DNA of 64,000 nt, from positions 77,376,001 through 77,440,000 of the forward strand of contig NC_043000.1 of the NCBI RefSeq assembly GCF_006345805.1. Direction: 5' to 3'. Within the stretch, counting starts at the first letter, position 1. Each line of letters opens with the position of its first letter. Position numbers and translations under genes: made by a program. The notes under the pieces are model-generated. The model saw nothing but the letters and a program-made list of their open reading frames with translations, was not told the origin of the DNA and ran no database searches. The stretch comes from Octopus sinensis. Taxonomy: Eukaryota. Shown here piece by piece: positions 12,034 to 44,200 of this stretch.

Positions 12034-12036
<3 letters not shown>

Positions 12037-12450: not shown

Positions 12451-12598
12451 CGAGTGGCTTACTTCCCAACCACATAGTTCTGCATTTAGTCCCACTGCGT
12501 GGAACCTTGGGCAAGTGTCTTCTACTATAGTCTCGGGCTTACCAAACCCTTGAGAGTGAATTTGGTAGATGGAAACTGAAAGAAGCCCGTCGTATATA
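12451..12598 (+). mobile_element. tRNA-derived SINE, 5' part
   Basis: Matches the SINE body at 18960-19085 (agtcccactgc..ttgggcaagtgtcttctactatag..ggaaactgaaagaagccc). Confidence 0.85.
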
Positions 12599-12769
12599 TA
12601 CACACACACATACATATATATATTTCCCACCCTTTCCCTATTCTTCTCCTCTCCCCTTTACCGTTCCCTCTCTCTCACTCTTCCTTCTTGACTCTCTCGT
12701 CCCTCACACGTGACCAACGGTTATCTATCTATCTGCCACTTCCTTCCTAAATGCTTTTGTCTGTCTCTT

Positions 12770-13140: not shown

Positions 13141-13235
13141 CAAATATACATATATATGTAGGTATGTACATATATGTATGTATATATGCATATATTTATA
13201 TATTAATTATATTATTTTATATATATATATGTATA

Positions 13236-14493
13236 TACCAGGTCATCCCATAAGTAATGTCCGGTCTTCTATATCTTTAATTTCTAAACTTTTTAATAAT
13301 ATTTTAGAATGTCTAATAGCATCAAGTAAGATTTATATGTATTTGGACATATTCAAACTCACTAGATTTCATTTTAAAGGATAATCTAATTGAAGTTTCA
13401 CGAATTATAGCTCTTCAAACATGGAAGTGTCTAAGGAGCATTTGAGGTACATAATGCTTTATGAGTTTAAAAAAGGGAACTCTGCAGCTGAAGTGACTCG
13501 AAATATTGACTCAGCTTATGGAGAAGAATGCCTGGATGAAAGAACTTGCAGAAGATGGTTTGTAAAATTCAGAAGTGATTTCAGCCTTGAAGATAAGGCC
13601 GGAACAGGACGTCCAATTGAGTTTGATGATAAGCTCTTTTTGATAGAACTTGAAAAAGATCATGGAGTTTCAGTTGGAGAATTGGCAAGCAAGCTTCGTT
13701 CAAGTCATACAACTATTCATCACCATGTTCAACAGCTTGGAAAGGTCCCAAAACTCGAAAAATAAGCTCCTCGTGATTTGTCTGAAATCAACTGCAGATC
13801 CCAGCTGGACATCTGCTCTTATCTTCGTTCTCGTGAACTCATCTCGACCTCTTAAGACAGACTGGTAACCGGTGATAAAAAACGGGTCACTTACCAAAAT
13901 GTTAAGCGTTGTAGACATTTTACCACAACCGTAAAGGAAACTCCATGCGAAGAAGGTTCTTCTCTCTGTTTGGTGAGATTGCAATGGAGTCATCCATTTT
14001 GAGTTGCTACTAACTAACGCAACAATCAATGTTCAAGTCTACTATCAGCAATTATAGCATTTGAACGCTGCTTTGAAGGAAAAAAGGGCCTTCTCTAGTG
14101 ATTCAAAAGGGACTGGTGCTCCATCAGAACAATGCAAGACCCCACACTGCTAAGATCACATTACAGAAAATCGAGGAACTTGGCTGGGAGAAAATTGCTC
14201 GTCTGCCTTATTCCCCAGACCTTGCTCCTTCAGATGACCCGTAGTTTACAGAATCATTTGGATGGATTAACTCTCGAAACAACTGAGGAATTTAAAACTG
14301 ACCTTTCAGAGTTCTTCTCTTCGAAGTTGAAAGAGTTTTTCACTAATGGAATTAGAATGGTTATGAGTAGATGGAAAGATGTCATAGTTAATCATGGAAA
14401 CTATATTGACAATTAAATTTCATTAAAATGTAAGATTTGATCACTTGTTTCCCTCACTTAAAATCCGGACATTATTTATGGGATGACCTAATA
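13236..14493 (+). mobile_element. Mariner (D,D34D) transposon, full length, transposase pseudogene
   Basis: TIRs aggtcatcccataagtaatgtccgg / ccggacattatttatgggatgacct in TA context; MEVSKEHLRYIMLYEFKKG..RRWFVKF, VTGDKK, HQNNARPH, YSPDLAPSD; frameshifts and stops. Confidence 0.95.
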
Positions 14494-14500
14494 TATATAT

Positions 14501-14559
<59 letters not shown>

Positions 14560-14633
14560 TGTTTGTGTGTGTGTGTGTTGTGTGTGTGTGTGTGTGTGTG
14601 TTTGTGTGTATGTGTTTGTGTGTGTTATGCATG

Positions 14634-15075
14634 TACAGGGTGGGGCAGAGAGGACGGACGTTTTTGAAAAATACACAAAATCATTAATTGACATCAATGT
14701 GTTTGTTTTGTCAAAAACAAATATGGAAAAGAACATCCATCATGTGGCGTCCGTTTTCACTGATGCATTTCTGAAGGCATTCTTGGAAGTTGGCCTCAAC
14801 TCTCTCCAACATTGCTCTGTCGACTTAGGTGACTTCCACGCGAATAGCTTCCTTCAAATCGTCTGAGCAGAGCGATTCGGACTCGTATCAAAGTTTGTCG
14901 CGTTCCACGTTTTCCGGGGTCCGTACCGTACGTGCCCCCCCCCCAGTCTCCTATTCATTAATGTACCTCGTGTACGAAGTGCATTCACCTGATGTAAGAC
15001 TGTGTTACGGATAGAAACAGCTTGGTTTCGGTGAACGTTGAAGTGGCGCCGAAACTTGCTGAACTACTGTGACAA
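14634..15075 (-). mobile_element. Internally deleted Tc1/mariner-family element
   Basis: Minus strand VRTPENVER (HTH region) joined to DDLKEAIRVEV..FQECLQKCISENGRHM (C-terminus); terminus tacagggtggggcag at ~14634. Confidence 0.7.
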
Positions 15076-15079
15076 ACTC

Positions 15080-15830
15080 GTTATTCTTCATGTAACTGGC
15101 GTAGGCAAACATGCGATGCTCTATTGTACACAGCTAGTAGGGAGTCATAGTAGTAAAGGGGGAAGGTGGGAGGAAGAGGAAAGGGTGGTTTAGGTAGTAT
15201 GTGAATGGTAACCTTTGTGTTAGTTTGTATGAAAACTATAGAATTAAAGGCTGAGATAATGAAAATGGGAATGGCCATTCTTTGAAGGAAATAAGTTGAC
15301 TGGCTCAGTAGCTGAGGGAGATTAGTATGGTATGTAGAGATGTATGGGTGAAGATAAACGGAGATAGAGTGGGGGTCAAAATAGTAGTTATTAGTGGGGT
15401 AAATGAACTGGGTTGGTATTGGAGGGGTGTTATGGTATGGAGAGGTATATGAAATTGAATACAGGGATTTGAATAGAGAGGGGGTAGAGATAGATTGGTT
15501 AGTTTTCAAAAGAGTGGGGTAGTGTTAAGTACTTTTGAAGGTAGGGAGGGTGGGGAGGCTGAGTGGGAAGTTGGAAGTAGTGGATTAGAAGAATTTGGAA
15601 ATGTGTATACGAGAATGAATAAGAGGCGGGGAGTATTTTTTAAGTGATAGGTTGCTAGCCTGGCTTTGTGTTAATTTAAGGTTATTTTGGGTGCGTGAAA
15701 GATGAAAAGTACCTTCGTTTACAGGAATAAGTTACATCAGAGAATCTGTTTAGTAATTAGGAGTTGTGAAGGCGAATAATGGTTAATGATTCTTTTAGAC
15801 ATAACTTGGCATATCCCATGTGAGAGCTGA
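15080..15830 (-). mobile_element. Penelope-like 3' fragment (GIY-YIG C-terminus and pyrimidine-rich UTR)
   Basis: Minus strand KESLTIIRLHNSxLLNRFSDVTYSCKRR (~15700-15795) fits the E...I...LLN...CRH end of Penelope GIY-YIG domains. Confidence 0.55.
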
Positions 15831-15834
15831 GAAT

Positions 15835-15945
15835 ATTTTGCTCAATGAACTTGGATGACGAAGGTTTCTGCTCGGTGGTGCCACGTCTTCTGACACGTGA
15901 CCGAAAGCGCACCAGGCTGACCATGTTACAGGAAAATGTGATATT
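15835..15945 (+). mobile_element. Mariner fragment of the same family as 19464-20616
   Basis: aacttggatgacgaagg..ggtggtgccacgtcttctgacacgtgaccgaa matches the reverse complement of 20085-20170. Confidence 0.85.
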
Positions 15946-16069
15946 AATAACCCCTAACCCTGAAATTTATTTTCTCCTCTCACTATTCTCTATCTAAATA
16001 CCTCCAAATTCCTCCTAATACACTCAGTTCTCCACAAAATCATTCCATCTTTAATCTCCTTTCTGTCAG

Positions 16070-16215
16070 CCCCTCAAATGTAGAACTTCTTCCCTGAAGA
16101 CGGAGGTTGGTATTATCTGGTGCTAGAATCAATTTAGAATCATTATTTTGGATCACTAACTCTCAAGAAACAGCTGTTGGACTCGTAAAACTCTTATTCA
16201 ACCCCTTTAATTCCT
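16070..16215 (+). mobile_element. Penelope-like pseudo-LTR fragment with hammerhead-like core
   Basis: CTGAAGA (16094) + stem ggaggttggt..actaactctc + GAAACAGCTGTT (16167), palindromic ACAGCTGT. Confidence 0.5.
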
Positions 16216-16345
16216 GATATCATTTCTATTCTGTGTTAGTCGGACCTCTCTATATGTAAACATATCTATATTTTTTGTATATCGATTTGCCTAACTTACT
16301 TATCCTTACGTTTACTCCTATATATATATATATATATATACAATA

Positions 16346-17601
16346 TATGTTAGTGGTCAAGGAAGTTCTTGCAGTTTTTAACCTTTAAATTCAGATACAC
16401 ATATCTCGGCTGAAACATAAATTTATTAATTGAAAAAAACACCATCAGAATGAACTCACTTTTGCCAACGCGAAACAAGTTTGTTTATGCCAGTAGCGTA
16501 AAAATCCTGCGTTCTTGTGGCGATGAAGTCATTGAAAGTGTGTTTGGCATCGTCTTGATTTTTGAAGCATTTCTCACGCTGGAAGTTGTCGAGATGCTTG
16601 AAAAAGTGGTAGTCGGTAGGCGAGAGGCCTGGTGAGTATGGCAGATGTGGCAGAGTTTCGTAGCCCAATTCGCTCAACTTCTGTAGGGTCAGTTGTGCGA
16701 CGTGCGGCCGAGCGTTGTCATGGAGAATTGGTTCTTTTCTATTGACCGATGCTGGCTGTTGTTGTCGGAGTTTCTTATGCATTTCATCCATTTGTTGACA
16801 GTACTTCTCCGCCGTAATGGTTTCGCCTGGATCCAAAAAACTGTGATGGATGAGACCGGCCAAAGACCACCAAACAGTCCCCATGACCTTCTTTTGGTGC
16901 AACTTTAGCTTCGGGAAGTGCCGTGGAGCTTCGTCGGCGTCCAACCACTAAGCTGAGCGTCGCCGGTTGTCGTAAAGAATCCACTTTTCATCGCAAATCA
17001 CAATCCGGTCGAGAAGCAGGTCGCTCTTGTTAGGTAAAAGAAGGGAAGACGACACTTCAAAACGGCATTTTTTTTTGGTTGTCGTTCAATTCGTGCGGCA
17101 CCTCAAGTATTTTTGTTTTTCCAATCTCTTTCAAGTGGTTGGAAATTGTCGTATACGTTTCGTCTAACTCGGAAGCAAGCTCTCGAACAGTTGTGCGTGA
17201 CCTGGCTTCGACTAAGGCTCTTATTTGATCGTTGTCAACATCCGATAGCCGACCACTACGCTTATCATTTTCAAGACTCTCGTCACCGCTACGAAATTTC
17301 TTGAACCACCATTGTGCTGTACGTTCATTAGTGGTTCCCGGGCCAAACACATCGTTGATATTGCAAGCTGTTTCAGCAGCTTTTCGACCTAGCTTGAACT
17401 GGAATAAGAAAATTGTGCGAATCTGCTTTTTGTCCATGTTGTATTCAATGTTCCGGAAAAAATGGCCTAATTATTCAAAAAGAAAATGTAACGCGAATAG
17501 ATAGAGAGGGTTTTAAAACAATATATAAAGTAACAGTAATTTAACGAAAATTTATTTGAAAATACATCACTTAAAACCAAAATTGAAAATTCCGCAAGAA
17601 C

Positions 17602-17608
<7 letters not shown>
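16346..17608 (-). mobile_element. Mariner (D,D34D) transposon, near full length, pseudogene
   Basis: MDKKQIRTIFLFQFKLGRKAAET..WFKKFRSGDESLE, VPHEL, HDNARPH, YSPGLSPTDYHFF; terminal gttcttgcagtttt / aaaattccgcaagaac inverted repeats. Confidence 0.95.
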
Positions 17609-17676
<68 letters not shown>

Positions 17677-17682
17677 TGTGTG

Positions 17683-17725
<43 letters not shown>

Positions 17726-17744
17726 TGTGTGCGTGAATACATAC

Positions 17745-19320
17745 ATAGGAGTGGCTGTGTGGTAAGTAGCTTGCTTACCCGCGCATGCACATTGAACAAG
17801 GGGGACATGAGCTAGTACGCTCCGTCCTAAAACTGAAAATTAAGAAGTCGGTCAAGGTAGGTGATTTCGTTTGTTTTGAGTTGGGCGTGATTTATTGTTT
17901 TGAAATTTTTTTCAATAAATTTCGCCCAGATCTGGGACAATTTCACCTGCTCTCGGCGGCTATTGTGATTTTTGTATGTTGAAAAAATGTTGGGGGCGTA
18001 TCCCCGCACAAAAATTGAAGTTGGTTCCAGTCATTAAAAATTTTTGTGGCCCATTGTGGCGAAGATTCGTCTTCTGTGGATTTAAAATTCCAGCTCGGAG
18101 TACCAGCCGAAGAAGAGCGCCAGGAGTACCTGTGGCCGGAATTGTGTAGTTGCCATTTGGAACCATATTTTTATTTCTTCGAGAGGTGAGGAAGAGACTC
18201 TGGACAAAGCAGAAGAGCCCCACTCTCCTGAAATCAGGAAGAAAAGAAAGAAGAACGGGTCATTGCAGGTGGGAGATGATGTGCCGTCTGCATGTCCCGA
18301 AGTTGTGTCACCCACGGGGGAAGAAACGACCCCACCCTTAAAGATGATGAATTAATTATCTTTTTCTACAAGGGCGGGGAGGTGGAAAAATAGTAGAACA
18401 TAAAGAGACAGTAGATATGCCCTTCACACAGGATGTGGAGGTCATAAGGTTTCCCTCGTGGGAAAGGCTTAAATGATTTGGGGAGGAGTGTCGCATATGG
18501 CCGGGTGGCCCTTACACGATTTACATGTCTTACATGAGTGAGGCATGGGAAATGGTGGGATACTGGAACTCAAGCGTTATTGAAGATAATGACGGATATA
18601 TTGATGGATATATCGATGAGCAGGAGGTGAAAAAGCCTCGTTAGAGGGTTTGAAACCTCATCTTAATGTATTATTTGTAGTGGTTTATAACCTAAATTGT
18701 TTGTTTTGAAAAAACCATGTTCAGTAAGAGGTTTTAGTGCCTCCTTCTTGTAAGAGGTTTGAAACCTCATATTGATCTTTAAAAAAAGAAAACTGTTTTC
18801 GAGAAAAATCCAATCGGTGGGTGTTGGGTTTCGTCTCTCATTTATTCATTTTATTTCATTTCATTTTCATTCATTAATGTGTTTGTCCAGCCCGCAAAGC
18901 TACCCAATCTTTGTACTGTCTATATGACAAATTTAATGAAATAAAGTAATTTTCTTACCAAACACATGGTTCCGGGTTCAGTCCCACTGCATGGCACTTT
19001 GGGCAAGTGTCTCCTACTATAGCCTCGGGCCAACCAAAGCCTTGTGAGTGGATTTGGTTGACGGAAACTGAAAGAAGCCCATCGTATATATATACATGCA
19101 TATATATATATGTGTGTGTGTTTGTGTGTCTGTGTTTGTCCCCCCAACATCACTTGACAACTGATGCTGGTGTGTTTACGTACCCGTAAATTAGCGGTTC
19201 GGCAAAAAAGGCCGATAGAATAAGTACTAGGCTTACAAAGAATAAGTCCTGGGGTAGATTTGCTCGACTAAAGGCGGTGCTCCAGCATGGCTGCAGTCAA
19301 ATGACTGAAACAAGTAAAGA
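17745..19320 (+). mobile_element. tRNA-derived SINE split by a 1.17-kb insertion (pieces 17745-17779 and 18954-19320)
   Basis: Head ggagtggctgtgtggtaagtagcttgcttacc resumes at 18960 with aaacacatggttccgggttcagtccc; 3' end aaggcggtgctccagcatggctgcagtcaaatgactgaaacaagtaaa. Confidence 0.9.
17780..18953 (+). mobile_element. Unclassified retroposon-like insertion with CTTACC target-site duplication
   Basis: CTTACC at 17774-17779 and 18954-18959; broken coding-like frames (VPAEEERQEYLWPELCSCHLEP; SPEIRKKRKK; KIVEHKETVDMPFTQDVEVIRFPSWERLK); ends aaataaagtaatttt. Confidence 0.7.
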
Positions 19321-19343
19321 GTGTATATATATATATATACACA

Positions 19344-19374
<31 letters not shown>

Positions 19375-19463
19375 ATATTATGATATATGTACACACACAC
19401 TAACACATACATGCAAACACACACACAGACATGCACACACACACAGACATGCACACACACACA

Positions 19464-20611
19464 TGCGGGTCGGCTGAAAAGTTCACAGGCTAACCAAGAT
19501 ACTCCATGGACTATGACCAAATGAGGTCCACACCCTTCTTCCATCGATGTTGCAAAGCTTGTATCCCATTGGTGAATGAGCTTTCATCCAATTGCTCAAA
19601 GAAGTCATAACAGCAGGTATCTAGTCATCATCACTGCGATACCGGTGAAGTGCTTTTTTTCGTGTTGGAGAACAGATAATAGTCAGATGGGGCCAAATCA
19701 GAGGAATAAGGAGGGTAATCAACCATTTTAAAGCCACAGTCACGCACAGAAGCCATTAAAACCAATGACTTGTGTTCCGGAGCATTGTTCTTACGTCAGT
19801 TTTCCAAAGAATTTGGTCTTGATAGCCTTTCATAACTGCCTCAGCAACTTGGCGTAGTACTCTCCAATAAACACAATGCCTTTTGCATCACCCAAAACTG
19901 AGGCCATCCCCTTCCTTGCAGATGAAACGACCTTGGCCTGAATTGGAGCAGATAAGGAGGGGTAGATCCACTGCATGGACTGTCTCTTTGTCTCTGGTCC
20001 AAAGTGATGAACCCGACATTCATCCTGGCTTAGGAAACTTTTAAGGAAACCAGCTGGATCTGTTGGAAGCAATGTCACAGTTTCCTGTAATGCGGTCAGC
20101 CTGGTGCGCCTTCGGTCACGTGTCAGAAGACGTGGAACCACCGAGCAGTAACCTTCATCATCCAAGTTCATTGAGCAAAATATTATCAGCTCTCACATGA
20201 GATATGCCAATAGCATTGGCTGTTTGATCACTATGTGGTGGGTACGATCAATGTCTTCCTCGGTGTTGGCAGTTGCAGGACGTCTAGACCTCCAAGACTA
20301 TCCGTTCCCATTCAAAATACATCTGCCCACGTTTGCACTGTTGATAAAGCTGGAGCAACCAGGTCAACATGAATGCTTTGGGGGCTAAACCCTTTTTCTG
20401 CAGTTACTTGATAAAACCACGATGCCCAATTCTGCCGATGTTCAAGGAGAAGTTGTTACTAGTTACTTCTGAAGTATCCTTTGAACAGTTAGATATTAGT
20501 TTTGGAAAGAAACAAAGTAATTATTCATAAGAAGAAATGAAATTAATGCATGCAAAATTTCACAGCCCTAGCATCACTTCGAAGTTAGTCTATGAAATTT
20601 TCAGCCTACTC

Positions 20612-20616
<5 letters not shown>
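19464..20616 (-). mobile_element. Mariner transposon, full length, pseudogene
   Basis: TIRs gcgggtcggctgaaaagttcacaggctaac / gttagtctatgaaattttcagcctactcccg; SQDECRVHHF.PETKRQSMQW and PYSSDLAPSDYYLF. Confidence 0.92.
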
Positions 20617-20657
<41 letters not shown>

Positions 20658-21156
20658 TTTGATTTCAGTTATTTGTTATTTCACTGCGAATATCTTTTAA
20701 TAAAAACATATTGTTTTATTTTCCATTAGAATACAAATATAGAAGCAAAATAACATTTAGTTAACTAAGACTTATATATTACTTTCTATATTGTCAAACT
20801 ATGTCATTGGTAAAGCATTTCATTGTTCTGAAAACGATGTAACATTATAGCAATCCTATTCAATTTTGTAGGCATACACAGTTCAAATGCTGTCTGATCA
20901 AAGTGGTTAGCTGTATCAGCGGCAAAACACTGGGCCAGCTGTCTTAGAATTCATGGACCGCGCAATCAACGGAGGTTTTCATGTATGCGAAGAGGATGTG
21001 AGTGAAGTCTGTGGTGAGGAGGTGGGAGGAATAGAAAGATCGGTGAGGTTTCCACTGATCTCGGTTATTGTCCGATTTATATTAATGTTAAAGGGACCTC
21101 CGAATCAGATAATGCAATCTTTTATTTCTTCCGGTCATTGCACTACTGCCATACTG

Positions 21157-21390
21157 GGGTATCGCCTTGAAGGGCTTTGGTCGAACTAAACGACCCCAAT
21201 ACTTATGAATCGCTAATTTAAGGGTAAGTAAACAAACTAATATCGATTGCCAAGAGGTGGCCGTGACAGTAACAAGCACAGTCACAAAGTCACACACATA
21301 TGCATACGTGGGGCTTCCACACAGTTTCCCTCCACCAAAATCACTCACAGAGCATCGTTGGCTAGGAGATCTGGGAACTGTTCCTAATGC
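21157..21390 (-). mobile_element. Degenerate SINE copy
   Basis: gcttccacacagtttcc..ccaaaatcactcacagagc and gtatcgccttgaagggctttggtcg are the antisense of the SINE at 18960-19320. Confidence 0.7.
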
Positions 21391-23012: not shown

Positions 23013-24079
23013 GTATTTCATTTTACTATTTGTTCAGGAATTGTCCTTTACTCTACCATCATTGTCGTCGTCGTCGTCGTCCGTCATCATCATCATCATC
23101 ATCATCATTTGCGGATAGGTTTTAAGTGCTTCGTTACCATATTCGTTTTGAAATACATAACCTTTGTCTCAATTAATTTTTTAAATGCTGAAGAAATTAG
23201 TAAAATAACAGAATCATTATTAGAATGGTTTTTGGAATTCCAATACGAAATTTTAATGAAAGGTTCTAATTTGGATCACTTTAAATCAGGACGCTGGTAT
23301 AGTAGAATCAGGGGTGATCTGAGGTGAGTGGGTATCAAAAGGGGTAAGTTACCTCATTTAACCCACATCACCCCTGTCTTTCTTTGCTTTTATATATGTA
23401 TATATGTGTGTATGCATAAATATATGTGTATATGTATGCATATACATACTTACATACATATATATATGTATGTGTATACACGCATGCATTTGCACACACT
23501 CTCACGCATACACACACAGACATGAAATAGAAGTGTACAGTGTTATATATCCATCACGGTTGATCTTAGCAATCGGTTTCGCGCTAGGGGCAACAATCCG
23601 ATTATATAACCATATATATATATATATATAACGTATGTTCTGGTATATTAGATGTACCCTTTTTACCCCATATTTCCCCACAAAAGTCACCATGCTCCTT
23701 ATATGCTGAAGAATCAGACTTTGGGTATATTTTGTTAGTGTTATTAACGATGGACCATAGAGGTGACGGTGGAGATCAGTGTTGATATTTGTTAGTGTTA
23801 AGGTAGTTATTGTAACTTAGTTTAACATAATAGCTTACCAAAGGCGCCAGTTTAAATTTTCATGGTTCCTATACATGAAAATGTGTGAGATATTCAGTTT
23901 GAGACTTGCGGGGTTAGCTTTCTATTTTCTCGCAAATTAGGTCTGCCAAAATTGGGGTACGCCTTATTTGCCCGAAAATACGGAATATGTACATATATGT
24001 GTATATATACACGTATGTGTGTGTGTCTATGCATATATACACACACATATAGATATATATGTACATACACATACATATG

Positions 24080-24142
<63 letters not shown>

Positions 24143-24691
24143 ATATGTATATCTTTATATATATAAAACTGAGAATGTGTGTCTCTGTCTGTCTGTTTGT
24201 GTGTTTCCCTAAAACTTGAGAACTACACAACCAATTTCATTCAAATTTTACATATGCCTTACTTAGGGTCCATGTAGTTTCATGGGCAAAAACAAATGTT
24301 CAACTTCTTGCCTAGAGCGAGCCATATCAATATCATATCTTCTCCACTATTTCAGTAATACGTGTTAAAAGTGAAACAAAAATATTTCTCTATTTTATGT
24401 CAGATGCTTTCGCTTTAACAATAAAAATAATAATAACAATTGAATTATATGTAGTAAGTAATAATTAAAATCAAGCTAAAGTATAATATAAGTAAAAATA
24501 GCAATTGGTATAAAATTGCATCAGTGATTTGAACTTGAATAAGTGGTTTCACATGAATGGGAATTAAATTAAAAATAAAATTAGCGTGCAGAAATGGAAT
24601 AGTCCAGATGGATAATAAAAATTTAAATTAAAGAAAAGACTATTTTCTATAAAGTATACAATCTAGAGAAAAAAGAAGAGCTAACAATTGC

Positions 24692-26160
24692 AGAGGAAAG
24701 AAATATGGTACGGTGGAGGTGAGATGCGCAACAAAAGGAGTTGCGCCCTCGTTAGCTTCCACGGTACTGAAAGCTGAAAACTTCACCATGTGGCCAACAT
24801 ATAAAGGACGAAGAGGGGTTCGGATAAAGATCCCAAAGGTGCCCCCAGAAATAAAAACAGAAATGCTGGTAACAGCTATTCTAGGGTCAGCAAAGGACGA
24901 AATAGAAATAGGCTCGATCAAGGAGACCAATGTTGTAAACTGGAAGGGATTCGGAGTGGAGATGTGGCTGATGGCCACAAAAGAAGACACAGAAAGGTTT
25001 CCCTTCCAAATTGAACTTGAAAATGAGAGAACAATGAGCGTAATTGTAGAGGGGAGAAAGCCGAACTGCTACTTGTGTGGGTCAAGAGGACACATAAGAA
25101 AGGAATGTCCGCTATATGAATTTACAGCAGAGAAGGAAATGGAGAAAAAAGAGACACAAAGTGGAAAGAACAAAAAAGAGAAGGAAAAAGAACACGAAGG
25201 AAAGATAAGCGAAAGCAAGGAAAAGGAAATAACGGTGAAACAACAAGAGAAAGGAAATAACAACGCACTGAAGGAAAATGAAATCAAAGGGAAGAAATTA
25301 ATAGAAAAGGAACAAAATTCACAGGGTAAAGAAGTAATAGAGAAAGAACCAAAACAGAATCAAGAGAAAGAAAAGGAAAGTACACTAAAGGAAAGAGAAA
25401 AGACAGGGAAAAAACAAGAGAAGGAACAGAAGCAAGATAAAGGAAAATACGGTACACGAAAAGAAAAAGAAACAACAGGAAAGGAACATAAGGCACTGTG
25501 TAGAGAGACGACAGACAAAGAGCCAAAAAGACAAGAGAAGGAAAAAGAATGAAGAGAAAACAAAAAGAGAGAAAGAGAGAAACAAAGAGAGGAGAACACG
25601 GAAGAAATAAGCCCGAAAAGGAAGATAAAGGAAAACGCAGGACGGATACAAGATTACTATTACTATAAGTTAGTAACCTATCATTTCTGCCCTGAAATGA
25701 GTGAATTAACAAGTAAAACGGAGGGACATATATGGGTCAACAGGATGACCGACCGGTGGGAGGAGACTGCTCTAATCCCCGAGGAAGGTGCCGCTGAGTT
25801 CTTCAGAGCTGCCGGAGAGAGTGTAATATTTTACACGAAGGTTCGAGTGAGAGAGCGGCTACCTGAGGACTCAGTGATGGACTTCAGAGAAGTGGAAACA
25901 ATTATAGAATATGTATAGAATTGTGAGAGGAAAAAAAAAGAGAAAAAAGAAAATTTTGTGAAATATATGTGACGAAAATGTAACCTCTTGATTCCGGGGA
26001 TCGAGTGGACATTTACATCTCATTGTAAATATTCTTTCATATGTAATTATTACTTTTATTTTTTCCTTTTCTTGTCATTCGCTTTCTTATTTTAAGTTCC
26101 CCGATTGTATTGTCCCCTCTATGTTCGCCCCTTGTGGGTGGTAATAAAATCATTGCAGTC
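24692..26160 (+). mobile_element. Element A: 5'-truncated ORF1-only Tx1-like retroelement
   Basis: Homology to element B starts mid-ORF1 at ~24692; no APE/RT sequence; ends ttgtattgtcccctctatgttcgccccttgtgggtggtaataaaatcattgcagtc. Confidence 0.85.
24713..25918 (+). pseudogene. ORF1-like protein of element A (RRM-like region, CX2CX4HX4C knuckle, K/E linker, ~88-aa C-terminal domain) with one premature TGA
   Basis: CYLCGSRGHIRKEC; ORFs 24713-25552 and 25697-25918 are in one frame and read through after the single TGA at 25550-25552. Confidence 0.85.
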
Positions 26161-27945
26161 TTCATTGAGTGTGTGTTGTTAGTTGTGACCAGACGGTGAA
26201 TTTTTTCTGTGTAAATTGATTTGATATCGCGCGAGGCGTTTGCCTCCACGTGTGGAAACCTTCCGAAGAAGGTGAATTGACCCTCTAATCATGGCGACTT
26301 ACGCGGGTGTCACCGGAAAAAATAGCGATTCGTCGCTAATTGTAAGGGAGGTGTTCCTTGAGAAGGAGAAACTCAAAGAATATGAAAAGCTTTTCAAAAG
26401 GGAGGGTGATAGCGTGAAGCTAATCCCCCCCGCGAAATCAAAAGAGGATAAAGAAAGCAAGACGGTGACATATAGAACCCAAGACAAGGATACGAAGAAA
26501 CTGGCAAGAGTGGAGATAGACGAAATTGAGAAATGTCTGGGAGACATAATGGGGAAAATAACTTACGTGAGTAGAGGCAAGAAATTTGGTACGGTGGAGG
26601 TGAGATGTGCAACGGAGGAAATTGTGACCTCACTGGCTACCACCGTACTAAGAGCCGAAAAATTCACAATGTGGCCCTCATACAAGGGAAGAAGAGGGGT
26701 CCGGGTTAAAATCCCGAATATATCCCCAGAAGTGAAAATAGAATGGCTGGCAACATCTATTCTAGGAGCAGCAGAAGAGAAAGTAGAGGTAGAATCAATT
26801 AAGGAGTCCAACGCGATAAATTGGAGAGGATATGGGGTAGAATTGTGGCTGATGGCCACAAAAGAGGATATTGAAAGGTTTCCCCACAGAATTGAAATTG
26901 AAGAGGAAAAAACCCTCAGCGTAATTGTAGAGGGGAGAAAACCAAACTGTTACTTGTGTGGGACAAGGGGGCACATTAAAAAAGAGTGCCCGTTATATGA
27001 ATTCGTAGCGGAGTGCGAGCAGGAACTTGAAGAAAAGAAGAATACTGTAAATGAGAAAGAAAGCATAGAAAAGGAAACAAAACAACAAGAGAAAGGAAAT
27101 AATAAGTCAATGAAGGAAAAAGAAATAAAAGAAAAGAAAGAAATAGAACCAAAACAGAGTCAGGGAAAAAAAAGGAAAAGGAAACAATAGGAAAAAAAAC
27201 AAGAGAGGGATCAGAATCAAACGAAAAGAAAGGACGGCACACAAAAGGAAAAAGAAAATACAGGAAAGGAACAGAAAGCAAGAGAGAAAACAGACAAAGA
27301 GCCAAAAAGACAAGAGAAGGAAGGAGAAAGAAAAGAAGGCAAAAAGAGAGAAAGAGAGAAACAAAGAGAGGAGAACAAGGAAGAAATAAGCCCGAAAAGG
27401 AAGATGAGGGAAAACGCAGGACGGAAACAAGATTACTATTACTACAAGTTAGTAACCTACCATTTCTGCCCTGTAATGAATGACTTAACAAGTAAAACGG
27501 AGGGACATGTATGGGTCAACAGGATGACCGACCGGTGGCAGGAGACTGCCCTAATCCCCGAGGAAGTAGTCGCTGAGTTCTTCAGAGCTGCCGGGGAAAA
27601 TGTAATATTTTACACGAAGGTTCGAGTGAGAGAGCGGCTGCCTGAGGATTCAGTGATGGACTTCAGAGAAGTAGAAAAAATCATCGAATATGTGTAAAAT
27701 TGTGAGAGGAAAAAAAAAAAAAGAAAAAATTTTGTGAAATATTTGTGATAAAACTGACGAAAATGTAACCTCTTGATTCCGGGGATCGAGTGGACATTTA
27801 CATCTCATTGTAAATATTCTTTCATATGTCATTATTACTTTTATTTTTTCCTTTTCTTGTCATTCGGTTTCTTATTTTAAGTTCCCCGATTGTATTGTCC
27901 CCTCTATGCTCGCCCCTTGTGGGTGGTAATAAAATCATTGCAGTC
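26161..27945 (+). mobile_element. Element B: apparently full-length (~1.8 kb) ORF1-only Tx1-like retroelement
   Basis: ~130-bp 5' UTR, ORF1 from ATG 26291, 3' UTR nearly identical to A, same 3' terminus; no ORF2. Confidence 0.88.
26291..27697 (+). pseudogene. ORF1-like protein of element B, frameshifted in A-runs of the linker
   Basis: MATYAGVTG..RGKKFGTVEVRCATEE..EGRKPNCYLCGTRGHIKKEC; reading resumes in the same frame with DYYYYKLVTYHFCP..IIEYV (27404-27697). Confidence 0.85.
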
Positions 27946-28193
27946 TGTTAATTGCGTAGTGAGTTATTATATTTTCCTCTGTTATATTCTACTGTGTTTT
28001 TGAAGTACTGTTGACTTTGTCTGTATTGTCTGTTGTTGTACAATTATTGTAATCATCCTTCGTGTGAGGGCTTCGTGTTGGTGTTCCCCCCTCCGTGGGG
28101 GAAAAACTATTATTATTGCTGCATTTGAGGCTTGCAAAACCAAAAACTTTTTGTCGCGGTTGTGCTAAAGGCTTGTTAAGTCAGTGTTAGGAG

Positions 28194-29500
28194 ATGGACA
28201 CCCCCATCTCCTATTCACATGTGACAAGTGATGCAAGATCACCGACGGTGTCGCCGAAAAAAAAAAGAAACCCCAGCACCAGCTAGAAAATTTTCTGAAG
28301 TAGCTGGAAAGAAAATTAAAAAAATTAACACTGCAAAACCTGCAGAAATACGCAGACTGTTTGATAAAAGAGGGCACAGAATTAACGGTGGTTACTAATG
28401 CCCAAAAGCAAGAAGAGATTGATAAAAAAAGAATAATATATAAGACATTCAACATCACAAGTAAGTCTATTCAAAAAATAGAGGAGAAAAAGATAGAAAA
28501 CTGCCTGAAGCCGATATGGGATAAGATTACGTACATCAATCGCGGGAAAAAATACGGCACAGTGGAGGTGAGATTTGCAACAGAGGAAGTAGCCAAAAAG
28601 CTATCCATGGAACCCATGAAAGCGGAGAATATTGTTCTCCTCCCCTTGTATAGAGGCAAAAGAACCTCAAGGATAACAATGAACAATATTCCGCCAGAAG
28701 CGGACGCCACATGTCTGGTGGCAGCAGTTATGGTAGGCCTGGAGGAAAAAATAAACATCCTCCAGGCCACAGTAGAGGAGGAAGAAAATTGGAAAGGGCA
28801 GCGTATAACGATAGCCATCCAGGCAGAGATACAAACACTGGAAGAGATTCCGGAGACACTGAAAATCAGTGAGGAGGAAAGAGTCACAGTCTTTGTAGAG
28901 GGCAGAAAGCCGAGGTGCTTCGGCTGCGGTAAGAAAGGGCATGTAAGGGCAGAATGCCAACCCAAACCGCAGGAAGCAGCCCAGCCAGGTGGAAGAACAG
29001 AAGAGGTGTCACCAGAAGCAGCGCCGGGCGGCCCAGAAGGGACGGCTGAAGGTGTGGAAGTGACAGAGGCAGCAGAACCGGCGGCGAAGGTAGCGGCGGA
29101 AACAAAGAGCGAGGAAACGAAAAATGAGGAGGGGTGGTCAAAAATCACTAGGAAAAAAAGAAAAACTGAAACCACCCCTCCGAAAGTAAACCAAAAGAAA
29201 AAAAGAGAGTCTTTGAACTCATTTATGGCCATTAAGGCCTCAAATAATAGACTCGGTAATGTGTTGGCAGCTATGGCCAAGGTAGAAAAAATTGGAAGAA
29301 AAAATGATTACATATTGTACAGAATAAGCCGGAAGGATTACGGACGAATAAAGTCCGAATTTTTTCATGACGTGGGCCCCCTCAGAATGGATATATCATC
29401 ACCATATATATTCGAGGGCCTGCGTAAGACTCCCACACGAGGCCCAGAAAAAGAGGAAAAAAATGAAGAAGAGAAAGGAAAAGTCGAACCACTGATATAA
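28194..29500 (+). CDS. LINE ORF1 (nucleic-acid-binding, CCHC knuckle) of element C; N-terminus frameshifted in an A-run
   Basis: 379-aa open frame 28361-29500; ATG at 28194 (MDTPISYSHV) in another frame; homologous to ORF1 of A and B up to the knuckle, with a different C-terminus. Confidence 0.85.
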
Positions 29501-29508
29501 GGTAAGTC

Positions 29509-32500
29509 ATGGATTACATTTATGTTGGTTGTTTAAATGTGCGCGGCCTGGGATCAAGCTGGAAGCAAGGTCGCTTCCTTAATGATATCAGGTCGCGTAA
29601 TTTGGATGTTATTGTTGCTACAGAAACCCGGTTAGAGGGGCCAAGAGGTCTACTCCCGCTGTTTGACGGCTACGAGAGTTTTTTGGCTCCGGCCAGTCCT
29701 ACAGGCGGGGGTGGGGTGTTGGTCCTATTAAAAAGAAACCGGGTTTTTGAGAAAAAGATAATTTTTTCAGACCCAGAAGGAAGGCTGGTCGTCATGGATT
29801 TGACGTTCAGTAACGGTAAAGTTATCAGACTGGTTGCGATTTACGCACCCAACCAAAAAGGGCAAAGTGATTATTTTCGAGAACTGGAAAACTTTCTTGG
29901 TACTTCGCATTCATTAGTTGTGCTAGGAGACTTTAACACAATTTGCAAAGCGGATGTAGATTGTGTTGGCTTGCGTCCAGATAGAAAAGGTAACATTGGC
30001 TTCCTGGAACTGCTAAGCCGCTTTGAGCTAGCAGATCCTTATAGGTTGGAATTTCCGAACGCTCCATTGTGGACATGGTTAAACAGCGACGGATCTTCCA
30101 GGTCATACATAGATAGGATACTAATTAGAAAAGTAGACAGAAAAATAGCTAAGTGTCCACAGTTTTACCTGATCAGCTACAGTGATCATAAAATGGTCAC
30201 CTGTAAGCTTGACATTGGAAGCTCCGGTTATTGGAAACTTAATAATTTTGGCGATTAAGGAGTACAGAGACCGGATTAGGACTATAATTCAGAGGACGCT
30301 ATCTGGTGCCATCATTAATAACAAATGGTGGTATGCCCTCAAGCGAGCCATCAAATTCGAGATATAGCTTGACATAGATAAGGTTAAAAATAGAGGCTCC
30401 GGTTATTGGAAACTTAATAATTTTGGCGATTAAGGAGTACAGAGACCGGATTAGGACTATAATTCAGAGGACGCTATCTGGTGCCATCATTAATAACAAA
30501 TGGTGGTATGCCCTCAAGCGAGCCATCAAATTCGAGATATAGCATAGGATTAGTGGCTAGAGAGGCTAGGAGGGAATCTACTCTAGTTAAGGAATTAGAG
30601 GAAGCCTTGAAAACTGGCTCTGCGGCTCAGGTGACGGCCAAGAGACTGGCGTTAAACCAGCACCTCGAGGCCAAACACATGGGCTGCATTGTCAGGGCTA
30701 GGATCCGCGCAATGGGTTGTGAAGGAATCAACGCCGTGAGATGGGCCCGAGTGGTGGAAGCTCAGCGTGGTAACAACGCCACGATTCGATCTATGACGAA
30801 CCAACAAGGTGAGTTGATAAACGAGCCCGAGGAGATGTGTGAGGCCTTTCAGGAGCACTTCGCTCAGCTTTTCGGTGAGGGCGGCGGACTGGATAGGAGG
30901 AGGGCCTTTACGGACCTCCTCGACGGGCTTCCGCGCTTATCGGGGCGAGATGTGGAGGGCTGTGAAGGGCCAATCACGCCTGGGGAGGTAGTTGAGGCGA
31001 TGGCGGACTGCGGCGCGGGCAAGGCGCCGGGTTTAAATGGTCTACCCTATGAGTTATATAAGAGTATGCCAGACTTTGAAGATTTTTGCCAAAGTGTTAT
31101 CGAAAAGATTGGCGCGTGTCGTGGATGGTCTGATCGGGGAGGCACAGACATGTGCCGTTCCCGGCAGAACCATTCAGGATAATCTCCATCTTATGCGGTA
31201 CGCTATAGAGTGGTTTAATAGTGATTCTGGCAAGGGTGGGGCACTGGTCCATTTAGACTAATCTAAAGCATTCGATAGGGTCGACCATCGCTACCTGGTA
31301 TCTGCCCTGGCACAGTTCGGGCTGGGCCTTGGCTTCCTCAGGTGGATTATCCAAATTTACGACAACATCGACTCGGTAGTTCGGGTGAACGGCTTCTTGT
31401 CGAAGCCGTTCAACATTAAGCGCTCGGTTCGTCAAGGGTGTCCGCTCTCCCCGCTTTTGTACGTGGTAGCTCTTGAGCCATTACTGCGAAAACTGAGCGG
31501 CATCCCGAGACAGCCAGGTTGTGGAAAATCGGTGTCAGCGTACGCGGATGACATCACCATCATCGTAACCGAAATGGATCACCTACAGAGGGTAGGCAAG
31601 GCCATAGAGGTTTTCGAGACGGTGACAGGAGCAAAAGTTAATCGTGAAAAGTCAGTCGGCTTGCAACTCGGCACTTGGAGAGGCAAGTCGATGCCTCCTG
31701 ACAGCGCTGAGGTTAAGACATCTGTGGCTCTACCTGGATGGTGAACGGGTGTGGTCTCTGCTAGCAAACTGATGTTTCCCAAGTTCACTAGTTTCGGTGG
31801 ATGGGAAACCTGGCTGAATCGTAGATCGAAACTGGGCACATGGTACACGGAGTGTCGCAAGGCTCTCCTGCTATTCCGTTGCTCGGGCAACACCTTCGGT
31901 GGGGGTTCCACCACATTCTTCTATAGAGGGTTGGTAGAGGCGGAATGTGAAGATACCTTGGGGGAAACCCTAGGTCTCGACGATAATCAGCTGGTCAGTC
32001 TGTTCCGACGTACGTTCGAGCCGAAGACACTGGACAACTTCCAGAAGTCTCTGGCATGGCAATGCTACAGAGGAGCTCTACCTGTTCGGGATAAACTCGC
32101 AAGGCACGGTGGCCAAGACAGTCCGATATGTCCAAGATGCGAGCGGGATAGGGAAACCGTCCCGCACGCTATTGTTCATTGTTCGGTCGTGTCTGAGGTG
32201 TAGGTTTATGCCGAACAGCTGTTGTCAAGCACACGAAGAGTACAGCTGTCGACTGAGTCTATTACAAAAATTGACCCACCAGATTTCCTCGCGAAAGAAG
32301 GTAAGAATTGTTTTCTCGTTGTAGTAGCAATTGCGAAAGAGGTGATATGAAAGACGAGAATGAAAGGTTTACGGTCAGGCAAGTTCATCTCCGGCCCTGG
32401 TTTGATGAATTACTTCATCTTTCACCTGAAAAGGAAGATAGGGCTGGAGAGAAAATGCCTGACTAAGAGAGTGTACGAAGAACGATGGAAAGATGTAGCA

Positions 32501-32530
32501 CGAAAGTTGCGAGTGGATGATACCACATAA
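29509..32530 (+). pseudogene. LINE ORF2 (APE endonuclease - reverse transcriptase - zf-RVT), multiply disrupted
   Basis: Intact APE 29509-30258, then internal duplication, frameshifts, stops and deletions (e.g. MPDF joined to LKIFAKVL; PPDSAE joined to VKTS). Confidence 0.92.
30206..30542 (+). repeat. Tandem duplication inside ORF2 (175-bp offset)
   Basis: gctccggttattggaaactt..aaattcgagatatagc occurs at 30221 and 30396. Confidence 0.95.
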
Positions 32531-32954
32531 ATGTAAAACTAGACGAAACCAAAGTATCAGTGGGGAGGCGGGGCTCGTGGGGTCCGAGCTAAACCCGCTC
32601 CCACTCCATCCGTAATGTCTTCCGGTTTGTTCTTCATTCGATTTTTTTGCTATTTTGTCATTTTTGTAAATTTTAAAATTCACCTTTTTTGTAATCCCAT
32701 CCGTTAATCTGACCCCACATCAGGTTGTATTGTCCCCTCTATGTTCGCCCCTTGTGGGTAATAATAAAACAATTCCAGTCTGTTATATATTTTGAGTATT
32801 GTTATCATTAGCGATATCAAGATATAACTTTGTATTTTGCATTTTATGTGTAGATGTATATATATATAGATGTACATGTAATATGTACACATATATATAC
32901 ACATATATACATGCACTAGCACTATGACCCAGCAACGGCGGGTCTTTAATGCTA

Positions 32955-32999
<45 letters not shown>

Positions 33000-41208: not shown

Positions 41209-44200
41209 GGTCTGCAAAAGTTCAACCCCTCCTCCACGGGGTGCAGACTGGGCAACGCGAGCACAGCAAGCCAGCTGTGCTAGCGGCAAACGGGGCTCTG
41301 ACAGTCATCAAGTTCTCAACGGTGGAACTGGCGGATGAAGTTGCCTTAACAACTCAACGGCTGTGAAGGCGGACGAAGGCTGTAGCAGACCATCGACTCC
41401 AATCGTCTCGGTTTACCTTGCCATTGGGTCAAGTTGGTGGTCTGTCAAGTTTACGTGTGCTTTACTGGGCGTGCGACCTCAAGCACACGTTAAAAATTTC
41501 ACGCACAGGCGTCTTCGCCACCACTCTTCTTCTTTCCAAGTCTTTCGGCGATCGGCGATGGATGACGGGAGCAGGCTCGTGAAAGCTGGAGGCTCCTAGT
41601 GCAGAACCGGCACGGATGCGGTGGTTACATGATTCAGTCGCTCTATCTTTCGGAAGAAGCAGGGAAGATGTTCGGCAGCAGTATCCACGACTGAGCAGCC
41701 CTGTTTAGGATCCACTCTGCTCACCCTGAATTGGGAAGGGGCTAGAAAAGGTGCCCTAAACATAGTCTGCTTCACCCCAATCCTGTCTGGAAAACCGCGT
41801 CCAGAGGGATCCCCATCATGCGGTCGAAAATCAAGATCAAGACACGCAACGCTGAAATTCGGGACCTGGAATGTCAGGACTCTCATAGATAACACCAACT
41901 CAGACAGACCCGAAAGGCGAACTGCAATCATCGCCCGGGAACTCCATCGATTCAATTTTGACATCGTAGCTCTCAGTGAAACCCGGAGAGCCGGAGAAGG
42001 CCGGCTGAGAGAAGAAGGCGGTCAATACACCTTTTTTGGAAAGGTTACGATCCCGACCATCAACGGATCCATGGTGTGGGTTTTGCAATACGAAACACCA
42101 TCCTATCCAAACTGACAGAGCAGCCCATCGGAATGTCCGCAAGACTCATGACCCTCCGAATCCAGCTTGTCAAAAGTCAGCACGCAACTATCATCAGCGC
42201 GTATGCTTCCACCCTTGACGCGGAAGATTTAGTCAAGGAAGAGTTTTACAGCCAGCTTGATAGCATTCTCTCTACCGTCCCAAAGGACGACAAGATCATT
42301 CTCCTGGGAGATTTCAACGCCAGAGTTGGGAGAGATCGTGAACTCTGGACAGGAACCATCGGAAAGGAAGGAGTGGGAAAAGTCAATGTCAATGGAACTC
42401 TGCTACTCACCAAATGTGCTGAACATAACCTGGTGATAACCAACACCCTTTTTCGCCAGAAGAATCGATATAAGGTCTCATGGCAGCATCCAAGATCTAA
42501 AAAATGGCATCTCATCGACTATATCATCGTGAGATTCCGAGGCCAGCAAAATGTGTTGCTCACCAGAGCCGCCACTGGAGCAGATGAGTGCTGGACAGAT
42601 CATCGCCTCATCGCCTCCTCCATGAAAATCAAACTCCGACCAAAAGTGAAATATCACAGCAAGGAAAGCAGAGTAAAGAAATTCAACATCGAAGCACTGC
42701 AAGACCCAAAAACTCGTGTCGCTTTCCAGCAGCGCCTACAGGTCAATCTTCAAAAAAAGACTCCAAATCATCTCGTCGAAGAAAATTGGAACCAGCTGAA
42801 AGAAACCAGCATCACCACTTGCGAAGAAACCATCGGTCGCAAGAAAAGGAAACACCAGGACTGGTTCGACGACAATGATGAAGCTCTCAAAGAACTGATC
42901 GACCAAAAACGGAAAGCTTTCATCAGCTCACAGAATGATCCAAAGTCTGTCACTAAACGAGAGTCTTTCAAAAAGTGCAAAGCCGCAGCTCAAAGGACAA
43001 CCCGTAGCCTGAAGAACCAGTGGTGGAGACACAAATCTCGTGAAATCCAGCAGCTAGCAGATGTAAACGACACCAGAGGGTTCTTCAAAGCCACGAGAGA
43101 AATATACGGACCTTCCACACATGGACAGGCTCCTCCGAAGAGTAAAGACGGAGCGACCATCCTGAAAAGCAATACCTAAATAGGAGACAGATGGAGAGAA
43201 CACTTTGATGACCTCCTCAATCACAAGGCTACCATCGACAAAAGCATACTTGACATGTTTCCTAAAGAGGCCAAATATTACTCTCTCGCTCGAATTCCAT
43301 CCCTCGAAGAGGTCAAAATTGCTATCACAACGATGAAGAACAACAAAGCCGCGGGTCCTGACAGAATCCCAGCTGAGTTCTACAAACTGGGAGGTGATTT
43401 TGTCCAACACCAGCCCCACCAACTCTTGGTCAAAATCTGGACAAATGAAGTTGTACCATCCGACTTCAGGGATGCTAACATCATTACCATTTACAAACGA
43501 AAAGGAGATCGGTCTGAGTGTGGAAATTTCGGGGTATTTCTTTATTAGCAACTGCTGGGAAGATTCTTGCACGCATCCTGAACAACTGCCTCAAAACGCT
43601 GTCAGAGAGGATCCTTCCTGAGACGCAGACCGGCTTTAGGCCATCACGAAGCACAACCGACATGATCTTCACGCTGCGACAGCTACAAGAAAAATGTCGT
43701 GAGCAACACCAACCGCTCTATTTGGCCTTTATCGACCTATCCAAAGCCTTTGATCGTGTCTCGCGAGAGCTCCTCTGGGATATTCTCGCCCAGTATGGAT
43801 GCCCAGATAAGTTCATCCGGATCCTCAAACTCCTCCACGACAATATGCACGCCAGAGTCCAGACCGACGGAGTGAAGCAAGGCTGCGTGATAGCGCCAAC
43901 TCTCTTTACCATCTTTATCGCGACAGTGTTGCACATCATACGAGATGACCTTCCACCTGGCATCGAGATCTCGTACAGAATGGACGGCAAGCTTTTCAAC
44001 CTCGCTCGCCTCAAAAGTACGTCAAAGACAATAGCGCGAAGCTTGCTAGACTTCCAATATGCCGACGACAACAGTGTAGCAGCTCACAGAGAGTATCACC
44101 TCCAACAGATCCTAAATGCTTTTCATCATGCATATACTAAACTTGGACTGAGCATCAACATCAAGAAGACTCACTTACTCTACCAATCTCCTCCCAATGC

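Follow-up and report, generated by a model that had tools for sequence, protein, structure and literature searches.

Helitrons capture genes and other sequences, as in maize, and mammalian HAL1 ('half-L1') elements, reportedly described by Bao and Jurka in 2010, are said to be L1 derivatives that contain only open reading frame 1 (ORF1). To our knowledge, Tx1L is the only L1/Tx1-type element that targets a DNA transposon. This Tx1-clade long interspersed nuclear element (LINE) of Xenopus laevis inserts at one site of Tx1D, a non-autonomous DNA transposon (PMC4494074). In Drosophila melanogaster, R1 undergoes double insertion at one site with the target kept in the junction, followed by unequal exchange (McGurk and Barbash 2018, PMC5932611). 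The repeat annotation of Octopus vulgaris uses 'L1-Tx1' for its L1-like LINE class and gives 13 recently active L1-Tx1 families and 8 Helitron families, and a composite of the two is not mentioned (PMC13282606). Here we analyzed a 64,000-nucleotide stretch of Octopus sinensis DNA (contig NC_043000.1; hereafter the window) and found that its positions 24152-32955 hold a head-to-tail array of three LINE units inside a Helitron-like element.

On the plus strand, a (TA)n run is followed by the composite, which comprises an AT-rich non-coding 5' arm, three co-oriented retroelement units (A, B and C) and a 186-bp 3' arm (Table 1). We consider it rather probable that it was formed by serial insertion at one Helitron site, with C entering first, ORF1-only units following later 5'-ward, and unequal exchange acting thereafter. 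A preliminary description of the window, made from the letters alone, had already proposed that A, B and C are co-oriented elements, and sequence reading, a common 3' box and Pfam domains bore this out. The 61-nt 3' boxes of the three units (family D11) are 90-92% identical and end in AATAAAA; A and B each contain a zf-CCHC domain, and the domains of C are Exo_endo_phos, RVT_1 and zf-RVT.

Related loci were reached only through annotated ORF1 homologues, and the resulting sample of eight composites, including the window, is biased toward arrays. Head-to-tail arrays were present at all 12 loci reached in this way. Seven O. vulgaris loci (L002, L003, L008, L009, L010, L011 and L012), on five chromosomes besides the window, showed the same layout with unrelated flanks: a 5' arm, one to eight ORF1-only units, one C unit and a 3' arm. 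The array began at the same place after the 5' arm in all seven arm copies seen and ran into the 3' arm in all four visible cases; within this sample the flanks are therefore not random, and random flanks would have reduced the motif to a part of the element tail. Orthology of the window and L003 was ruled out by their unrelated flanks.

The two ends of the composite carry Helitron termini. The 5' end starts with TC (TCTTTATATA.. at 24152) and the 3' end at 32955 is ..GCTAG, in agreement with the 5' TC and 3' CTRR of Helitrons; TC and CTAG termini were also found at 54198 and 54590 of the window and in L003, L008, L009, L010 and L012. The GC-rich hairpin expected near a Helitron 3' end is formed by GACCCAGCAACGGCGGGTC, 7 nt before CTAG, and its DNA-folding z was -4.7 in the window, -6.1 in L009 and -7.3 in L010, the 3' hairpins of the small elements being weak (z = -0.9 and -0.1). 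An A preceded TC at five of five 5' ends, and a T followed CTAG at five of five 3' ends. The Helitron thus lies between A and T without terminal inverted repeats and without target duplication, with a caveat for the large copies, whose (TA)n flanks prevent a duplication from being excluded; the flanks of the small element at 54198-54590, GGAAA on the left and TATTA on the right, contain no repeat. Short (TA)n runs also surround all large copies at other loci. Between loci, homology has exact limits, TC on the left and CTAG on the right, and the 3-kb outer flanks are unrelated. The window 5' arm is 88-92% identical to the arms of L003, L008, L010, L011 and L012, with an identical start base, and its 3' arm is 95-97% identical to those of L009, L010 and L012, with the same CTAG end before a T.

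The compact element at 54198-54590, followed up by motif search and sequence reading, pairs both termini, and the two ends therefore belong together. Its 5' end reads TCTTTATATATAAAAGTGAG..GTGTGTCTGTCT after an A, with a 35-nt terminus (TCTTTATATATAAAAGTGAGGTTGTGTGTCTGTCT) that matches 24152, and its 3' end reads ..GCAACGCCGGG..CTAG before a T, a terminus of the ..CCCGAGCAACGCCGGGCGATACTGCTAG type as in the large composite. A matching 3' end occurs in O. vulgaris (L008 6186-6217). Both arms also stand on one copy in L010 and L012, which are complete with 5' arm, array and 3' arm. The Helitron ends claimed at 24152 and 32955 were thus upheld by these termini, the hairpin fold and the homology limits, and the concern that they might come from different families or copies was removed by the compact element and the two complete copies. 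A similarity search for more copies of the two arms within the window gave low-complexity matches only. Neither the window nor the related loci showed a Rep/helicase gene (the octopus genomes were not DNA-searched), and the family is therefore called non-autonomous and Helitron-like.

The four junction strings of the preliminary description were all found in place: aacaattgcag at 24683-24693, atcattgcagtct at 26149-26161, atcattgcagtctgtta at 27934-27950 and aacaattccagtctgtta at 32768-32785. Their motif directly follows the AATAAAA tail of every unit, so that the boundary takes the form AATAAAA(T)CA(A). The initial CA or CAA is an overlap between LINE tails and host, and the duplicated host part is TTSCAGTCT(GTTA), with lengths of 6, 9 and 13 nt. 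After CA or CAA, junctions J0 to J2 read as in Table 1, and J3, from C to the 3' arm, reads TTCCAGTCTGTTA and runs on into the arm. Each upstream copy repeats the start of the Helitron sequence beyond the array, extending for 6 nt after the 5' arm, 9 after A and 13 after B, with the original after C. Judged by their sequence, these copies look as expected for nested target-site duplications with one fixed first nick and a variable second nick. A target duplicate kept in each tandem junction, as in R1-type arrays, was found at J0 to J3 of the window, in L008, in L012 and in the loci of the sub-lineage H2 described below.

It is very improbable that there is neither a Helitron nor a target here, the motif being simply the retroelement 3' end and TC and CTAG being chance features of TA-rich DNA. 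The motif does lie at the very end of the 61-nt common tail, the 5' end of the composite falls in low-complexity (TA)n, and a 14-mer search of the whole window gave 2 matches against 0.83 expected, which is not significant alone. The evidence from the motif comes from its position, not its frequency: by our own arithmetic, the chance of 10 or more matches out of 11 at a given position is ~8e-6. However, the 5' arm, too, ends in the motif without a LINE tail before it, and the motif occurs without a LINE tail in L009, L010 and L012; near-identical O. vulgaris array units carry other spacers; and the termini recur in pairs in the compact element and in complete copies elsewhere. That the spacer is a mere part of the LINE tail or leader was ruled out as well, since B units of 98-99% identity carry different spacers in L002 and L003, the spacer being local host sequence.

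Comparison of the composites revealed two Helitron sub-lineages. In H1 (window and L008), which is without segment Y, the array stands after ..GAAGAGCTAACAA, and the insertion point is between ..GAGCTAACAA and TTCCAGTCT. In H2 (L009, L010 and L012), the array stands after ..GAAGATTTGAACA, and the insertion point is between ..GATTTGAACA and CATGGAGGAAAG, that is, at the start of Y; each H2 unit is then followed by a CATGGAGGAAA-type spacer consisting of the first bases of the downstream segment Y. Y showed no similarity to the 5' arm, the 3' arm or any LINE unit. The junction type of L008 is that of window J1 (..AAAATC+TTCCAGTCT+TCATTGAGTGTG), and TTCCAGTCT was seen at four junctions across window J0 to J3 and L008. 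On sequence grounds, the H1 and H2 arrays were founded separately, each no more than 5-8 nt from the common purine-rich 5'-arm end ..AGAGAAAAAAGAAGA.

The preliminary description had taken the motif as the target site and held that each insertion regenerates it. As to the target, the flanks are indeed fixed in position, but the motif alone is not the landing signal: the AACAATTCCAGTCTGTTA site is present but unoccupied in three of three H2 copies, which would be unexpected were that sequence the target, and their array lies a few bases upstream with another duplication (CATGGAGGAAA..). The emptiness of the H1 motif in H2, where Y instead of the arm lies upstream, suggests recognition on the arm side, so that the site may be chosen through the 5'-arm-side sequence (..AGAGAAAAAAGAAGA plus 5-8 nt) and not through the duplicated motif. 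As to regeneration, uninterrupted host sequence GCTAACAATTCCAGTCTGTTATATATTTTGAG adjoins the 3' arm in L009, L010 and L012, and window J0 matches its GCTAACAATTCCAGTCTGTTA, but the first two or three bases (CA or CAA) belong also to the LINE tail. Eight of eight composites lie at the same Helitron position, with two independent site variants, which may reflect a target preference; the sample is small and biased, and related families form arrays elsewhere.

The order of insertion can be read from two features. In L012, a perfect 18-nt repeat (CACATGGCTCCAAGCTAT) stands on both sides of the lone B unit. This variant was found at no other locus, and its last bases correspond to the start of the downstream C unit; B therefore entered between the arm and a resident C. 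In addition, J0, J1 and J2 have a G at a position that is C in J3 and in every O. vulgaris copy, and a C-to-G change after the insertion of C and before that of B explains the four copies by a single mutation if the array grew 5'-ward, whereas growth on the 3' side needs two. The earlier proposal that successive insertions build a tandem array is supported by the nested 6-, 9- and 13-nt duplications together with the L012 repeat.

The proposed course of events is as follows. The host would be a non-autonomous Helitron of ~0.7 kb, inserted between A and T in a (TA)n run, whose interior offers a landing site for an L1/Tx1-type LINE group. Target-primed reverse transcription would start each time from the same bottom-strand nick (between AA and CA(A) on the top strand), with the 3' CA or CAA of the RNA overlapping the target, and a second nick 6-18 nt downstream would produce a target-site duplication that restores the site. 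The autonomous C would have come first, and the ORF1-only units were presumably mobilized in trans by a C-type ORF2 protein, because they encode neither an endonuclease nor a reverse transcriptase (RT) but share the 3' box with C. Later ORF1-only insertions would have used the site copy beside the 5' arm, making the array grow 5'-ward with A as the youngest unit. Arrays elsewhere would have been enlarged further by unequal exchange, as indicated by the equal spacers of L003 and by array blocks of units with 98-99.8% identity.

A one-step origin, in which RT starts on C RNA with its own ORF2 protein acting in cis and then either switches template to ORF1-only RNAs or copies a B-to-C co-transcript produced by read-through, appears quite unlikely. 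It would fit the findings that C is present and last in eight of eight composites, that ORF1-only units were never seen without a downstream C and that the B-to-C junction is conserved across loci. However, template jumping copies no host DNA, yet every junction holds local host sequence of differing length. Furthermore, the duplication around B in L012, which was seen nowhere else, takes in the beginning of the resident C, and the first B unit of L011 comes from a different sub-lineage (87% identity to window B) from the following two (92-93%).

Several observations weigh against serial insertion at a preferred site, beside the unoccupied H2 motif. No empty Helitron copy, with the arms joined through ..GAAGAGCTAACAATTCCAGTCTGTTATATATTTTGAG or Y, was found among the eight composites reached through ORF1, and occupancy therefore cannot be estimated; the intact site sought between the arms in other copies does adjoin the 3' arm in three O. 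vulgaris copies, but none has both arms joined. The long homogeneous array of L003, with equal-length spacers, fits unequal exchange as well as repeated insertion. Junction variants shared between loci (B-to-C in L002, L003 and L009; J0 in L003 and L011) point to copying of the whole composite. Arrays also occur outside this Helitron, in more distantly related C-like families (L004-L007), and those of L006 and L007 have a period of 5.28 kb with no visible duplication.

Some of these observations would also follow if a single chance LINE array had arisen in one Helitron and spread with it by rolling-circle transposition, with unequal exchange and gene conversion altering the unit numbers and homogenizing the spacers and with no target specificity of the LINE. 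We regard this as unlikely, although it accounts for the homology from TC to CTAG between loci with unrelated flanks, the idiosyncratic B-to-C junction CACATGGAGGAAATCAATTTTTTGCG that is identical in L002, L003 and L009, the identical J0 of L003 and L011, the 98-99% identity of B units at different loci and the occupancy of all 5' arms seen. The H1 and H2 points with their unrelated duplications are not interconvertible by point mutation while the adjoining tail and leader stay >90% identical, and the nested duplications of the window and the locus-specific one of L012 need separate insertions. In addition, unit order and type vary between copies. The nearest relative of the window copy is L008 (B 94.9%, C 95.7%), but arm and cargo of L008 disagree: its 5' arm is nearest that of L003 (95%), and its cargo is nearest that of the window (95-98%, versus 78-82% to L003).

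Returning to serial insertion, repeated colonization of Helitron copies fits this mismatch, the varied unit type and order and the existence of four groups of C units, which have 96-99% identity within and 76-88% between groups in the 5' untranslated region and ORF1, and 91-99% in the apurinic/apyrimidinic endonuclease (APE) regions. The arrays are heterogeneous, with A-type, B-type and other units whose type and order differ between loci. A comparison of arm and cargo trees, which bears on co-transposition versus independent insertion, gave mixed signals. Composite copying and repeated colonization probably both occurred, and movement of the Helitron together with its cargo is plausible. A two-way partnership, in which the Helitron is a dispersed safe landing pad recognized by the LINE endonuclease and itself transposes with an intact, expressed LINE array as cargo, is a speculative and on balance doubtful extension. 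The open ORF1 (340 codons) and open ORF2 (1130 codons) of the L012 C unit, inside a complete copy, are pertinent to it. If it were true, a LINE lineage and its ORF1-only dependants would spread not only by reverse transcription but also by rolling-circle DNA transposition.

The ORF1 proteins of B and C have 36% identity, and the 3' box is the only part that the two units have in common; unit B therefore appears to be a separate ORF1-only lineage sharing the tail of the autonomous element. B is HAL1-like in having ORF1 and a LINE 3' end without ORF2 and in being multicopy, with more than 30 units across the O. vulgaris loci. Its identity is 94.9% with the L008 unit and 87-93% with at least 30 arrayed O. 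vulgaris units, and some O. vulgaris ORF1-only units retain a 380-codon ORF (P0001). Unit A aligns with the part of B that begins at B position 412, with 79.6% identity, and its nearest relatives are the units between B and C in L008 (85.8%) and L010 (83.9%). The N-terminal APE, RT and C-terminal zinc-binding domain of L1-superfamily ORF2 proteins were found in window unit C and in the intact ORF2 of a C relative in L004 (6107-9508; 1133 codons), for which the top solved-structure match in the PDB was human L1 ORF2p (E = 3e-68, residues 4-869). ORF2 has 1130-1133 codons in intact relatives; unit C carries stops and, compared with them, lacks ~157 bp near 31076 and ~359 bp near 31706. Fish relatives have ZCCHC3-type RNA-binding domains plus CCHC, which, together with the 'L1-Tx1' label of the O. 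vulgaris annotation, lends indirect support to a possible place in the Tx1 clade. No octopus proteins were found among the ORF2 homologues, whose top matches had 57% and 41% identity, and two metagenome scans, with the beginning of the 3' arm and with the LINE 3' box, gave no matches. A structure in the 3' box was considered and is not claimed: the consensus fold has only an invariant 3-bp CCC/GGG stem with no covariation.

Table 1. Positions of the window features and of the related O. vulgaris copies.
Feature	Sequence	Position	Strand	Description
(TA)n microsatellite	Window	24077-24151		Adjoins the composite 5' end; counterpart (TA)n at 32956-32996 after the 3' end
Helitron 5' arm ('pre')	Window	24152-24684	+	Begins with TCTTTATATATATAAAACTGAG after an A, ends ..AGAGAAAAAAGAAGAGCTAA
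J0 (5' arm to A)	Window	24685-24693	+	CAA+TTGCAG; host target remnant on the 5' side of the array; truncated unit A follows directly
Unit A	Window	24694-26150	+	ORF1-only LINE unit, 5'-truncated (starts inside ORF1); 279-codon ORF with CCHC knuckle 24713-25552; C-terminal ORF1 piece 25697-25918; ends in 3' box + AATAAAAT
J1 (A to B)	Window	26151-26161	+	CA+TTGCAGTCT; 9-nt host-target copy
Unit B	Window	26162-27935	+	Full-length ORF1-only (HAL1-like) LINE unit, 1.77 kb; 5' leader; CCHC ORF1 26291-27190, resuming past an A-run frameshift at 27404-27697; no ORF2; ends in 3' box + AATAAAAT
J2 (B to C)	Window	27936-27950	+	CA+TTGCAGTCTGTTA; 13-nt host-target copy
Unit C	Window	27951-32769	+	Autonomous-type L1/Tx1-like LINE, decayed (family D9); ORF1 28361-29500; APE 29509-30258; RT fragment 31385-31744; zf-RVT 31751-32203; 3' box 32725-32769
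Helitron 3' arm ('post')	Window	32770-32955	+	Opens with host target copy CAATTCCAGTCTGTTA (32770-32785); hairpin 32926-32944; CTAG 32952-32955, then T
Compact Helitron-like element	Window	54198-54590	+	393 bp, between A and T; no retroelement cargo; both termini as in the large composite
L002	OX597820.1			At least 5 B, C
L003	OX597814.1			5' arm, 8 B-type units, C
L008	OX597833.1			5' arm, 3 units, C
L009	OX597816.1			Partial 5' arm, 4 B, C, 3' arm
L010	OX597830.1	8036-19375		Complete copy
L011	OX597814.1			5' arm, 3 B-type units, C
L012	OX597816.1	8625-16789		Complete 8.2-kb copy: 5' arm, 1 B, C, 3' arm
Segment Y	L009, L010, L012	19763-20082 (L009); 18897-19205 (L010); 16300-16621 (L012)		~320 bp; between the array and GCTAACAATT.. 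sequence, H2 only

Other features were observed in the LINE units and their relatives. The ORF1 of units A and B contains a lysine/glutamate-rich, internally repetitive stretch (25130-25600 and 27040-27400; repeat families D2, D6 and D8), and the frameshift that breaks ORF1 of unit B falls in an A-run inside it. A tandem duplication of 175 bp marks the end of the APE region in unit C (30204-30368 and 30379-30543, copies 96% identical); none of the O. vulgaris and O. sinensis relatives compared has it. L004 of O. sinensis contains at 10166-21353 at least four identical, internally deleted C-type units with a period of 3.57 kb, in which ORF1 is joined to the 3' third of ORF2; they follow one full unit with the intact 1133-codon ORF2. 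L005, also from O. sinensis, has a heterogeneous array with a locus-specific spacer (ACTGAATACTCGTCAT) at three junctions, before two different leaders, and a 25-nt unit (GGCGGTGTCGCCAAAGAAAAAAGAG) repeated in tandem about six times at the ORF1 start of one C-like unit (9590-9745). Another non-LTR fragment lies on the plus strand at 42076-44582 of the window, with an endonuclease-RT domain (367-codon ORF) and RVT_1 (354-codon ORF), and is unrelated to the tail family of A, B and C.

Around the Helitrons, interior pieces of the compact element recur at 51268-51331 and 51607-51648, and a near-perfect palindrome (53777-54035) that resembles a foldback element or MITE (miniature inverted-repeat transposable element), with 119-nt arms that are 95% complementary and a 21-nt loop, lies just upstream of it. 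In L011, an inverted fragment of the 3' arm of another Helitron copy, with hairpin and CTAG, occupies 8443-8563 on the minus strand, 40 bp from the composite 5' end. The 5' arms of L011 and L012 have an internal duplication of ~145 bp in common. A 1.7-kb gap in L010 was considered as Helitron sequence and ruled out, being a diverged ORF1-only unit.

Site-specific LINEs are natural models for programmable RNA-templated DNA insertion. The octopus system would add a Helitron as a LINE target, an ORF1-only partner family with merely a 60-nt 3' box in common with the autonomous element, and a natural experiment in which sub-lineages that differ downstream of the nick and share the upstream arm point to the recognition side. 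The window locus illustrates how serial insertion at the same site leads to tandem arrays, which can expand into satellite-like blocks of up to eight or more units. For octopus genomics, such composites account for an entanglement to be expected among some L1-Tx1 and 'Helitron' annotations.

Among known systems, Tx1L/Tx1D is the closest to the octopus composite. In both, an APE-type LINE of the L1/Tx1 group occupies one fixed point inside a non-autonomous, multicopy DNA transposon and forms composites with it, and the octopus element resembles Tx1L in its ORF1 with a CCHC knuckle and its ORF2 with APE, RT and C-terminal zinc-binding domain. However, Tx1D is a piggyBac-type element with terminal inverted repeats, whereas the octopus host is a Helitron-like rolling-circle element, and the octopus site is used repeatedly, giving arrays of 2-9 units, most of which are ORF1-only non-autonomous partners. 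As in R1, LINE units in head-to-tail order have a duplicated stretch of the target between them, 5'-truncated units give tail-to-internal junctions (octopus unit A), and later expansion produces homogeneous blocks; unlike R1, which targets ribosomal DNA, the octopus LINE would target a mobile Helitron, and its arrays mix autonomous and ORF1-only families in a composite dispersed over several chromosomes.

The A- and B-type units resemble HAL1 in having a 5' leader, a CCHC ORF1 and a LINE 3' end without ORF2. However, the low identity of B ORF1 to that of the resident autonomous unit, with a 3' box of ~60 nt alone in common, places them nearer to the tail partnership of LINEs and short interspersed nuclear elements than to a recent deletion derivative, and they were found only inside arrays. 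Like Helitrons that capture sequences, the non-autonomous octopus Helitron holds foreign sequence between conserved termini at several loci; in contrast to read-through capture, its cargo entered by retrotransposition, according to the target duplications at each junction. What is new here is the Helitron host, the repeated use of its site by an autonomous element and ORF1-only partners, and the dispersal of the composite.

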